Part shown: piece after piece, positions 630 to 6,641 of the stretch
How positions within the stretch are numbered: position 1 is the first letter of the stretch
How the letters are laid out: each line of letters opens with the position of its first letter
Source: Zygophlyctis sp. KS116
Lineage: Eukaryota; Fungi; Chytridiomycota
Direction of reading: 5' to 3'
Length of the DNA: 6,780 nt
NCBI GenBank assembly: GCA_054661495.1
Contig: BAAFSQ010000427.1
Location: forward strand, 1 to 6,780
Translations under genes and position numbers: made by a program
The notes under the pieces: model-generated
Seen by the model: the letters and a program-made list of their open reading frames with translations, nothing else
What the model was told of the DNA's origin: nothing
The model's database searches: none

Positions 630-1388
630 CTAAGGTAGGCGGTGTGGAGTATCATTGATAATTAGGAATTTCTTGCATTGGCGTAATAACTTTGAAGTGA
701 GATTTCCATCGTACGAATTTAACAAGACAGCTTTTATCCGATCAAAAGAAGGCGGTTGTTGTTGATTTACGGCCAGAAAGTAAGCTGGGTGACGAGAAAG
801 GAAATCCGCAACAATGTTCTCTTTTCCTGAACGATGTTTCAATGTAAAATTAAATTCCATTAAGCTATTCGTCCATCTTAGAATACGTCCTGCAGGGTCT
901 TTAGCGTTTAACAGACTAGCTACTGCAGAATTATCTGTAAAAATAGTGAAATGTCGTGGTGAGAGATACTTTCTAAACTGTTTAACGCTAGAAACAACTG
1001 CTAAAGCTTCTTTCTCGTATGCAGAGTAGTTCATTTCTGCCGGCTGTAATACACTAGAAAAATAACAAATAGGTACCAACACTTCATCCTGCCATTGTTC
1101 TAAACAGGCTCCTATTGCAAAACTTGAGGCGTCACTCGAAAGCACAAAAGCTCCCTCCTCTGTAGGTAGTTTTAATAGAGGTGATGTAGTTAAAATTTCT
1201 TTCACTTGATCAAATGTTTCTTGCTGCTCCACCCCCCAAGAAACAACGGACGATTTTAATAAAGATGATAAAGGCAACTTCAACTGTGCAAAATGAGGAA
1301 TAAAACGACAAAAATAAGAGACCAGACCATAAAAGGAACGAAGCTCTTTAAGATTTCGGGGTGCAGGTAACTTCGTTAAGGCGCTAAA
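630..1388 (-). pseudogene. Ty3/Gypsy RT connection plus RNase H remnant
   Basis: ORF 630-1400: P-x-N-LKELRSFYGLVSYFCRFIPHFA, W...QQETFDQVKEILTTSPLL, DASSFAIGA, EKEALA, TDN, ADFLSR. Confidence 0.95.
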
Positions 1389-1756
1389 ATAAATAATCAT
1401 GAAAGATACGGTTCATGACACGAGAGAAATGAGCGGGAGCGTTGGTCAATCTAAATGGCATTACATTGAAGCGAAATATACCAAACGGTGAGATAAAAAT
1501 AGTGTAATCTTTTGAGTTTTCAGATAATCGCACTAGCCAGTAACCCAAAAAACAGTCTAATGTAGATATAAACCTCTTTCAAGCCATCATATCTATCAAA
1601 TCATCAATGCGAGGTAATGGATAAGTGTCTTTTTTTGAGCGCGTTCAGTTTAAAGTAATTTATGCAGAACCGCGGGCTACCATCTGGCTTAGGTACGATT
1701 TTGATAGGACTACACCAAGGCGCGAATGAAGGTTCGATAATCCCAGCATCTAACAT
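1389..1756 (-). pseudogene. Ty3/Gypsy reverse transcriptase N-terminal half, truncated before YxDD
   Basis: Continues in frame after the TAA at 1757-1759: [40 protein letters not shown], a frameshift in the A/T run near 1630-1637, then [30 protein letters not shown]...FGIFRFNVMPFRLTNAPAHFSRVMNRIFHDYL. TGA at 1579-1581. Confidence 0.93.
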
Positions 1757-2641
1757 TTAAGTGACTTCCTCCTGAATAACGGCGCGTTCTTCAGTTGTAT
1801 ATCTTTTCAAATTAGACTTTATAGGAGTAACATGGGCAGGATCGAATAAAATCAAATCATAATCTGAATCTCGAATTCCTGGGATATCAGAAAATGTTTC
1901 AGCAAATAAGTCTGAATTTTCGAGAAGTAACACAGACATAGTTTTCTGCTCCTCCATAGTTATCGTTGGTTTTGTATTTACAAAATAATCTTGCAAGGTA
2001 CTCTCTGTCAATCTAAAAGCAGGGTCCTCAGAGTCGTCTTCTGTCATATTGGTAATTTCTTCTTTTGTGTATAACTGTATAGTAACCGCTTCATCTTCAT
2101 GGATCATGGTTAACGTTTGTTTAGAATAGTCAGTTAATGTTTTTAGTTGCACGAGCACGTCGATTCCTATTAAAATTGAAGAAGCGCAAGGGTCCATAAG
2201 CAAAAAGGTGATAGGAATAATGGTTCCTTCCATCTCCACAGGTAAGACTACATATTCACTAATTTCCACCGGGTCTCCTTGTATTGGCGTTAACATTATA
2301 TTTTCTCCAAGTTTTGATGGTACGTAACCCAGTTTTTTAACAAAGGTAGTCTCTGCTATGGAATAGGACGAGCCGCTATCCAATTAAATAGGTACATCGA
2401 CTTCGTTTATAATAGCTTTTATGTAACTATATCTATTACTTTTATCATCGGTGAACAAGGCATTTTTTGTCTTGTTGATATTATTTAATCTCGTTATGAT
2501 AGTGGATTTTAAGTGAGGCTGAATCTTCAATAATTCTCTAGTGGTGATTGGGGCCGGCTCGTTTAGTGTTCGTTCTACCATAGAATTGCTATCCAATCTT
2601 GTAATATTAGAATTTTTCAACTTTTTAGGATGCCTACGCAA
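1757..2641 (-). pseudogene. Retrotransposon aspartic protease and linker
   Basis: ORFs 2384-2641 and 1757-2383 share a frame and are split by one TAA (2384-2386): EVDVPI*LDSGSSYSI (catalytic DSG at 2372-2380), later ILIGIDVL. Confidence 0.9.
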
Positions 2642-3915: not shown

Positions 3916-5259
3916 TAATTTAATTCATTTCCTAGTTTTAAACTATTGCCGAAATCTGTTACTAACCAAGTGCGAGCAAATGCCAAAATGTAGTCGACAG
4001 TATGTTTGCACAGATGAATTTAAATTACAATTTAATCTATTATAATACTGCGCTAATTAATTCTTCTTAACGCCCAAATCTTTTTTAACTTGTCCGAAAG
4101 ACCGGATGAAGTTTTTTGTTTAAGCGAGGCATAAACATCCTCAAACTGAGCGAGAGCATCATCTTCATTCATGCCTTGTTTAATTTCATCTTCAACTTTC
4201 GTCATTATGCCTTTAATTCGTGAATACTGTTTTGCTTCTGCTAAAGTAAATCATTTTCGCCACTTTCCTTTAGTATTTACCTCAAGCGCAGACAGACCAC
4301 CAGGATAATATGGAGCTCGAGACCACAATCCTTTGCCTGTCCATTCATGCCAATAACTTATTACTGAATTATGGAGGCTATAAAGTTTGTACTGGTTATC
4401 GTGGCGACAGAATCAATACGTTCATTATGAGATGAATCAGCATTAGGAGAATTAGAAGGAGAAGAATCAGAAGGAGAGGGATTACATACAGTGCCAAAAG
4501 AAGATGAAGCGAGACCGACTTGATTTTCTGACGAAACCAAAGCAGCCTCTCTGGCGCTGAGTGTAGGGTAATAGAAAGAATTATCGAAAGATGCCATATG
4601 GGTTATATATCTATCCACTTTATCAATCTTTGGAAGCATTTGGTAAACCGTCTCACTAAGTCTGCTTACTTTGCCACAAGTAAGGCTGTCCGCCCAACAA
4701 TATCATGATGAATTTCCCCCAGTTTTTCACTAAGGACTGGGATTGCACGATTCAACGAAAGTTCATCGGGATCATCCGCCTTAGCATGGGTGTTTAAGTA
4801 TGTAGCCATATCTGTTCTATACTTTTCGAATGCCTCAGACTGAAATATTGGAAGCGTAAAAAGCATGTGCTCTACTCCATTAAGCATCATCAAAGCCACA
4901 TCTTGGCAAAGTACTTTCCTTAAATAGACAAGTAAATTAAAAAAAGCTCTTAAAGTAGGCGCACCAGTAGTATCCATATCATCGATGAATGGTAAAATTT
5001 GATTAAGTATTTCATCCGGTACTTCAACAGCCGATCTCGGCAAGTAAAACGAACCTTTTTCACTTTTGTGCCCCGCCATTTCTCTTTAAGCCCTGAGTGG
5101 AAGTTTTGAGGAATAACGATCCTCTTGACAATCGGGATTCCAGATACCAAGTTGCTTAATAGACATAGTGTCTATTTCTTTTAGCTCAGCATGTACAGAG
5201 CCAACGGACCTACCAAATTGTACATAATGCTTTGTCTCTAGTTTCAAAGATTCGCAAGC

Positions 5260-5286
5260 CTGTAGTTAATCTGTTTACGAAATTAC
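5260..5286 (-). other. Putative 27-nt spliceosomal intron in the Crypton gene
   Basis: AAG|GTAATTTCGTAAACAGATTAACTACAG|GCT: GTAAT donor, TTAAC branch-like motif, CAG acceptor. Contains two in-frame TAA. Removal gives YRNSIEK^ACESLKLETKHYVQFGR. Confidence 0.85.
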
Positions 5287-6308
5287 CTTTTCTATACTAT
5301 TTCTATATGTTTGATCCGTGATCGCTTTTTTAGTAGTTTGACAACCATGCTTATCAATCACAGTTCCAACGTTATAACCAACAAGTAATTTTACATCGAA
5401 CCATGAGGCGTTCGAAGACCAATCAATTTCTTCCTTACCAAAGGTAAACCTGGCAAATAGGTGAAGCGATAGTGCACCTATAGGGCAAAGGTTGACATCT
5501 TTGTGCCTCATGACTCGACCATACAGGGTTTTAAGTCCATTGGTTTTTCCAACTTTAATTTGCATTACTAATATGCGACATTCATGAATACCTTGGCCTT
5601 CTATCTATATCTGGCAAAGATCTGATAGATCGCAGTTTATCACCGATTCCCCTCGTAAAATTCCAAATAAAGTTTGTAAAAGCATATATCGATCTCTAGT
5701 TGAAGCAATACATAGATTTGAGGAAGGGCTATCACATTTTAAGGTAGAATTATAATGAAAGAAGAACCGCTCAATCTTTGAAACTTGCGAGGCGAGGGCG
5801 TATGGAGCAAATTCAGCTGTTACTTTCTCTTTATAGTTCTTTTTTGCTATTCTTTCTTTCTATTCTTACAAAAGTTTAGAGTCCTCTGAATCCGCTCAGA
5901 GTGTAACATATTTTTGTTACTATTGTTGGCACCCATATCCACTTGATGCTGCCAAAGTTTAAGAATATCACACCAACTTTGATTAATAACCTCATAACCA
6001 ACCAAATTCGGGTTTTGATTGTCCAACATACCCTTGTCCGCTTCATCCATCACTTTGTTGAAATCTTCCATGTCAAATGCCGGCTTTAGCCTCTTACTTT
6101 CTGGTCGTGGTCCACGTTTCCTTGGAGATCGATAGGCTTGATAAAACAAGAATGCGAACACTTTTTCTTCAGTAACTGTCTCCGCATACGGGTGGCCACT
6201 CCACTTTTGACGACAGAAGGAGAGAAATTCTCCTGCCTTTGGGTCATATGCATTTGCAGTGTTAGTCTTAGAAGCTACAGCATTACTATCAGCTAGAAGA
6301 ATTTGAGC

Positions 6309-6332
6309 CTAATTTTAGCTTATTTGGAATAC
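6309..6332 (-). other. Putative 24-nt spliceosomal intron in the Crypton gene
   Basis: CAA|GTATTCCAAATAAGCTAAAATTAG|GCT: GTAT donor, GCTAA branch-like motif, TAG acceptor. Contains in-frame TAA and TAG. Removal joins MSLYTSGEFAAQ to AQILLADSNA...YDPK. Confidence 0.75.
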
Positions 6333-6437
6333 TTGAGCTGCAAATTCTCCACTAGTGTAAAGAGACATTTGAGGAAAAAAACTTAAGATTTCTCAAGATT
6401 ATTCGCGTACTTAATAACAGCACTTGCCTCAAGCCTG

Positions 6438-6489
6438 GGTTAATAACCGCGTTTATTTATTGTCACATGTGGTTAATAACCGCGTTTAT
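6438..6489. repeat. Exact 19-bp direct repeat GGTTAATAACCGCGTTTAT upstream of the Crypton ATG
   Basis: Copies at 6438-6456 and 6471-6489, each containing the palindrome GGTTA-A-TAACC. Partial TTAATAAC at 6411-6418. Confidence 0.9.
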
Positions 6490-6641
6490 AAACCTCAATC
6501 ATGACTGACTCGTCAGGAAACGCGCTAAAAAGTCTGACGCGACTAAAAATACTTCATATGGAAAATCACCGGGTGTGGGGTACAAATCCTGGAGGAAGGT
6601 AGAGGTTCTAATTAGGGCACCGGCGGCTCCGTCTTTAGTTA

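Follow-up and report, generated by a model that had tools for sequence, protein, structure and literature searches.

Why should the gene for a transposon recombinase be broken, in the middle of its catalytic domain, by 27 nucleotides that begin with GT, end with AG and carry two in-frame stop codons? The question is posed by a 6,780-nucleotide stretch of DNA from the chytrid fungus Zygophlyctis sp. KS116 (hereafter the window), whose minus strand carries a Crypton gene that extends from an ATG at position 6368 to a stop codon at 4055-4053. Spliceosomal introns can interrupt the gene of CryptonF transposons, a group reportedly first described by Goodwin and colleagues in 2003, and the initial annotation of the window had proposed that the segment at 5260..5286 (-) is such an intron. 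Judged from comparative sequence analysis, the segment is very probably a remnant of a genuine micro-intron of the U2 type, with GT-AG ends, that once interrupted the gene of a CryptonF-like tyrosine-recombinase transposon.

The identity of the element was established by homology searches run exon by exon. The exon pieces match the Pfam family NDC10_II, which represents tyrosine recombinases of the Crypton/Ndc10 type, with E values between 3e-12 and 9e-5, and the whole locus, when read through, scores 103 bits. Five motifs follow one another on the minus strand: ILRGES (the Arg motif, 5661-5644), GKTN (the Lys motif, 5550-5539), QFGR (5220-5209), GIW (5148) and EDRY, which carries the catalytic Tyr (5124-5113). 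We take these to correspond to the tyrosine-recombinase catalytic residues R, K, HxxR, W/H and Y. Where the window has QFGR its relatives have HxGR; specifically, HFGR or HIGR is found in the second copy in this genome, in the C137 paralogue and in the metagenome contig L047. By these motifs, the family possesses a full catalytic set and the window copy has lost the His of HxxR.

The C-terminal part of the gene is more divergent. A Ser/Pro-rich linker (4413..4668, minus strand), recognized by three-frame translation and aligned by no homologue, leads to a GCR1_C-like domain at 4056..4412 (-). The pieces of the window give no Pfam match to GCR1_C and only a weak hhalign result; positions 4400-4077 align to the C terminus of the related element L043 (E = 5.7e-12), which itself scores 22.7 bits for GCR1_C against a cut-off of 23 bits. 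Because of this alignment to a sequence so near the cut-off, we assign the window element a CryptonF-like architecture with a divergent GCR1_C domain. The union of a tyrosine recombinase with GCR1_C defines the CryptonF elements of fungi and oomycetes (Kojima and Jurka 2011, PMC3212892). The same genome contains 33 NDC10_II matches on about 28 contigs, and the full pairing of recombinase and GCR1_C occurs at many other of its loci.

Upstream of the ATG, a region at 6369..6554 (-) is recognized by comparison of the copies as common to the second copy. It includes two identical 19-nt direct repeats (6438-6456 and 6471-6489), 33 nt apart and kept in the second copy, which are a possible recombinase-binding or promoter element. 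Beside the Crypton, at 630-2641 (-), lies a decayed Ty3/gypsy-type pol gene with Pfam matches to RVP_2, RVT_1 and RNase H and with internal stops. The contig is transposon debris.

Within this gene, the 27-nt segment has the anatomy of an intron, and the initial annotation had described it correctly in every detail. Its donor is GTAAT, preceded by the exon end AAG, and its acceptor is CAG. The sequence TTAAC, a putative branch-site-like motif, is followed by exactly five bases to the 3′ end. Two codons of the segment, the fourth and the seventh, are TAA. It lies in phase 0 relative to the frame on both flanks, between exon ends NSIEK and ACES, and interrupts the gene between the GKTN Lys and the HxxR-equivalent QFGR, 13 codons upstream of the latter. 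To gauge how often such signals arise by chance, we counted them at 215,000 positions of fetched DNA. Arbitrary 27-mers have the form GT..AG in 0.28% of cases, combine a GTA[AT][GT] donor with YAG in 0.02%, and add a TRAY motif near the 3′ end in 0.006%, all of which are upper bounds because the counts include real introns.

Can the copies within this genome decide whether the segment was spliced? By its reading frame, the window copy is a dead pseudogene. It contains three private stops (TAG at 5607-5605, TAA at 5088-5086 and TGA at 4253-4251); the second copy has GAG at the position of the TAG, Leu (TTA) at that of the TAA at 5088-5086, and His (CAC) at the Gln of QFGR. A 1-nt frameshift within an A-rich stretch at 5853-5850 (-) is common to both copies. 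We also considered a 23-nt GT-AG intron at 5869..5847 and rejected it: the reading with a 1-nt frameshift is gapless against C137, L045, L046 and L047, and the KNRKK-type stretch that the window gene shares with its relatives at this place is coding in all of them. Not every frame break in the window gene is an intron. The frame changes twice in the linker, from 0 to 2 near 4668 and from 2 to 1 near 4400, and either change may reflect a frameshift or an intron of very small size.

The genome assembly (12.7 Mb in 1175 contigs) contains only one near-full-length copy of the family, together with two further fragments, C361:844-1550 at 92% identity and C636:1677-2034 at 94% identity. They meet end to end at window position ~5400. 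Both carry a duplicated 10-bp site (TGGTTCGATG; L002, about 844, in C361 and L003, about 1677, in C636), and an inverted core of about 15-20 nt lies near both insertion ends. Because of the abutting ends, the duplicated site and the inverted core, we regard the fragments as two parts of a single second copy into which a TIR DNA transposon has inserted; a duplicated site of this length would possibly fit a Mutator-like element. The region that the second copy has in common with the window reaches 6554 on the 5′ side.

The C636 part of this copy keeps the segment, with its length of 27 nt, its GT, its AG and the TAA at codon 7, and differs from the window at 5 of the 27 positions. No codon position is favored among the differences between the copies (5/4/6 and 13/14/19), and 17 synonymous changes stand beside 40 non-synonymous ones. 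This pattern shows neutral decay of both copies, from an ancestor that had probably lost its function before. Because the copies were probably dead when they separated, the TAA common to both is no proof that the segment was non-coding in a working element, and because both decayed neutrally, comparison within the family cannot prove splicing. The selection test between the two copies thus neither supports nor refutes past splicing, and the higher divergence of the intron, 5/27 against 15/331, is not interpretable under neutrality.

Stronger evidence comes from more distant homologues. The C137 paralogue (locus L020) is 51% identical in amino acid sequence, its exons are stop-free, and it continues in one frame across the junction, such that the end of exon 2 (5287..6308, minus strand) lies opposite L020 position 1863 and the start of exon 3 (4669..5259, minus strand) opposite 1864. 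Three ORF fragments from public metagenomes (P0001, P0004 and P0007) are likewise continuous. In alignment A5, no column separates the end of exon 2 from the start of exon 3 in any of these four homologues. Thus, the gap expected by the initial annotation in a protein alignment falls exactly at the 27-nt segment in each of the four. The distant families C754, C735, C162 and C403 are also continuous at the junction.

It had also been claimed that removal of the segment closes the spacing to the HxxR-equivalent motif. This is borne out by the close homologues, but not by Pfam profile coordinates, which we dropped as a test of the spacing since they are uninformative where the junction region is a variable loop. 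Indeed, loop length does vary nearby. About 20 codons upstream of the 27-nt segment, at about 5350-5376 (-), the window gene has a nine-codon insertion, GYNVGTVID, relative to all homologues. This insertion has the same length as the segment, is open in both copies, and is a coding loop that is not intron-like.

Outside this genome, no close members of the window's own Crypton family were found, the best match being 61% identical in amino acid sequence. This closest relative, L047, is 61% identical on exon 2 and 68% on exon 3. Its segment at L047:1331-1358 is 28 nt long with GT-AG ends, shares codon boundary and phase with the 27-nt intron, and is of unrelated sequence. The L047 gene consists of 18, 124, 206 and 93 stop-free codons (441 in total), and these exons join in frame only when segments of 24, 25, 28 and 25 nt are removed. 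The initial annotation had held that its reading would fall if intact copies carried sense codons at this place and homologues aligned through it. Instead, homologues skip exactly 27 nt, and L047, the best intact-looking copy, has a 28-nt intron there, in the same phase; the intron reading was not refuted.

The gene contains a second segment of this kind. Exon 1 (6333..6368, minus strand) comprises 12 codons beginning with the ATG at 6368, and its N terminus aligns with those of C137 and L047. It is followed by 24 nt (6309..6332, minus strand) with GT-AG ends, phase 0 and two in-frame stops, placed 12 codons after the start codon. Exon 2 then encodes the N-terminal domain and the first half of the recombinase domain, and exon 3 the second half; both halves match NDC10_II, the limits of the second being supported also by homologue alignment. 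The 24-nt intron is without counterpart in C137 and in L042/L043, which read straight through with an exact eight-codon gap, whereas L047 has a 24-nt GT-AG intron (292-315) at the same site. Two intron-like segments in one gene, both bounded by alignment and both matched in L047, are no coincidence.

Three other explanations deserve consideration. The one that survives best, though we judge it quite improbable, is that the 27 nt are a non-intronic insertion, such as repair filler or another small insertion, that entered an already dead element and merely resembles an intron. Both neutrally evolving copies do share an inactivating frameshift, and the lesions could predate their separation. However, homologue alignment sets the borders of the segment independently, and these borders agree with GT..AG, a host-type donor and TTAAC; the chance of such agreement is at most 2e-4 per placement for donor and acceptor together. 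The segment also shows no similarity to its flanks (shuffle p = 0.93), as a slippage duplication would, and on the same ground we rejected a duplication as the origin of the intron. Above all, a 28-nt GT-AG segment stands at the same codon boundary in the independent and apparently intact L047, and a private insertion in a dead copy is therefore strongly disfavored.

Still less credible is the proposal that the segment represents nine codons of a lineage-specific coding loop that later decayed to stops. The open GYNVGTVID insertion gives this proposal a genuine precedent nearby. Against it stand the TAA at codon 7 common to both copies, the absence of any similarity between the translated 27-nt segment and other sequences, and the counterpart in L047, whose 28 nt do not divide by three and include stops in a gene that is otherwise open. 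Finally, an assembly or sequencing artefact is barely conceivable: the assembly is fragmented into its 1175 contigs, but the segment occurs on two of them, five substitutions apart, and an equivalent segment occurs in an unrelated metagenome assembly. A micro-intron remains by far the best account of the segment.

Why, then, is the intron so small? The answer appears to lie with the host, because its own introns are about 25-30 nt long. In several HSP70 paralogues of the genome, the profile continues without loss from one match to the next across interruptions of about 20-30 nt, and the interruptions correspond to GT-AG introns of 29, 28, 29, 28, 27 and 30 nt at conserved positions; a single longer intron, of about 170 nt, also occurs. 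An ORF-bridging scan of the HSP70 loci including neighboring genes, a small sample of 29 kb in which the shortest candidates were used, yielded approximately 14 clean introns of 25-30 nt. The donors of the sampled introns are GTAAG, GTATG, GTAAT and GTATT. TAAC-like motifs also occur in them, 6-10 nt before the 3′ end versus five bases for TTAAC in the window, and most end in TAG or AAG versus CAG in the window. Among the papers that we searched, we found no report of micro-introns in chytrids.

These observations uphold, as far as gene structure predicts splicing, the suggestion that the host splices micro-introns. The companion suggestion, that the transposon has conformed to the host's size, holds in part. 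The Crypton introns (24, 27, 28 and 25 nt) fall at about the host range, but nothing points to shrinkage from a longer intron. Because intron positions differ between lineages, "conformed" is better read as introns existing at host size.

This difference in position is evident when related Cryptons are compared. The window family has micro-introns of 24 and 27 nt. L047 has 24 and 28 nt at the same two sites and two further introns of 25 nt. C137 has one of 28 nt before ILRGES and one of 25 nt at G/NW (the slash marking the splice position), and L045 has one of 27 nt at SLR/DR and one of 25 nt at G/NW. L046 has a single intron of 21 nt, L041 has one of 24 nt located 4 nt away from the window's site, and L042/L043 have introns of 21, 19 and 19 nt. 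Overall, about eleven different intron sites occur in eight related elements, with three sites shared, and the G/xW site is also used in distant families. The introns of L042/L043, at 19-21 nt and not 24-28 nt, are on a contig apparently from another host, and their length apparently tracks that host's intron size.

One of these introns hints at how such segments may arise. The 28-nt GT-AG segment of C137 (L020:1486-1513), whose removal is needed for the frame of an otherwise stop-free gene, corresponds to the upstream unit of a 33-nt tandem exon duplication, shortened by five bases (shuffle p below 0.0005). The five-base deletion created a GGTAAG donor, and the duplication junction created CACTAAC eight bases before the AG. 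L045, the nearest relative of C137, is continuous at this site. On this evidence the segment may be an intron caught at birth by duplication, or it may be a plain frameshifting duplication in a single-copy element. Two points are new: related Crypton lineages differ in their intron sites, and one intron-like segment is visibly a tandem exon duplication. We offer only as a tentative proposal, which we hold to be somewhat less probable than its contrary, that Crypton micro-introns in the chytrid lineage turn over rapidly and can be born at host size when short stretches duplicate locally, such that transposon families record intron gain.

The 27-nt intron of the window carries no such mark. Its 27-mer occurs once in the 12.7-Mb genome, even with up to three mismatches allowed, and with no further copies in the genome we rejected an introner-like, multi-copy origin.

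Two structural features of the related loci were also observed. The end of C137 and C267:1-77 overlap exactly over 77 nt in opposite orientation, which is typical of a repeat junction in a de Bruijn graph, and the 3′ part of the C137 Crypton is probably present in more than one copy that was collapsed in assembly. At L046:980-1192, on a metagenome contig, the Crypton is cut off just after the H of HxxR by a sequence that, by eye, resembles the C terminus of a Tc1/mariner transposase.

How might the intron have behaved in a working element? We infer both past activity of the element and actual splicing of its message, and the following scheme is conditional on them. In an active ancestor, the host spliceosome, which would routinely handle introns of 25-30 nt, would have removed the 27 nt. 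This removal would have joined ...NSIEK to ACES... and placed HxxR 13 residues downstream, as in the intron-less relatives. In a message that kept the intron, translation would end ahead of HxxR, W and the catalytic Tyr, and the unspliced message could therefore not make an active recombinase. The position of the intron is older than the window family, because it is common to the L047 lineage. Today, the intron is a fossil without present function, because the window copy is dead and evolving neutrally.

On its own, the 27-nt intron would be one more intron in one more dead transposon. Its value lies in what surrounds it. A related element is open only with such segments excised, and a fast-evolving gene family may thus provide independent confirmation, at the level of gene structure, that the host removes introns of 24-30 nt. 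Transposon genes in a micro-intron host carry introns of host size. Moreover, lineage-specific intron sites, together with one candidate for birth by duplication, make the origin of micro-introns testable in these fungi.

The system is best appreciated beside those already known. Genome-wide micro-introns of about 25 nt in Paramecium and about 15 nt in Stentor have been described (PMC5014332, PMC9505925). As in ciliates, nucleomorphs and some microsporidia, the GT-AG introns discussed here lie near the lower size limit of spliceosomal introns and have a narrow length distribution, and, as with ciliate-type micro-introns, in-frame stops or lengths that are not multiples of three make retention non-productive. 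Here, in contrast to the ciliates, the host is a fungus. Introners (PMC12130899) similarly link intron gain to mobile DNA. However, introners are multi-copy intron sequences, whereas the 27-mer here is unique and lies inside a transposon gene, and the transposon itself does not act as an intron.

Among Cryptons, the window element resembles CryptonF in having a single gene in which an NDC10_II-like tyrosine recombinase is followed by what is probably a GCR1_C-type DNA-binding domain. It departs from CryptonF in general in that its introns are 24-28 nt long rather than of ordinary fungal size, and from typical CryptonF in that the C-terminal domain of its subclade falls just under the Pfam GCR1_C cut-off and the copy at hand is dead. 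A parallel for variable introns is the Glomhopper CryptonA of Glomeromycota, in which predicted introns occupy positions that are not common to the copies; the authors of that study warn that introns predicted in pseudogenized Crypton copies may be artefacts of the gene predictor (PMC13465315). Glomhopper belongs to a different group (DUF3504) and has introns of ordinary size, such that the likeness is that of Crypton genes with variable introns. In contrast to Glomhopper, the two intron positions of the window family are common to two lineages and are backed by the intact-looking L047 gene, and not by a gene predictor alone.
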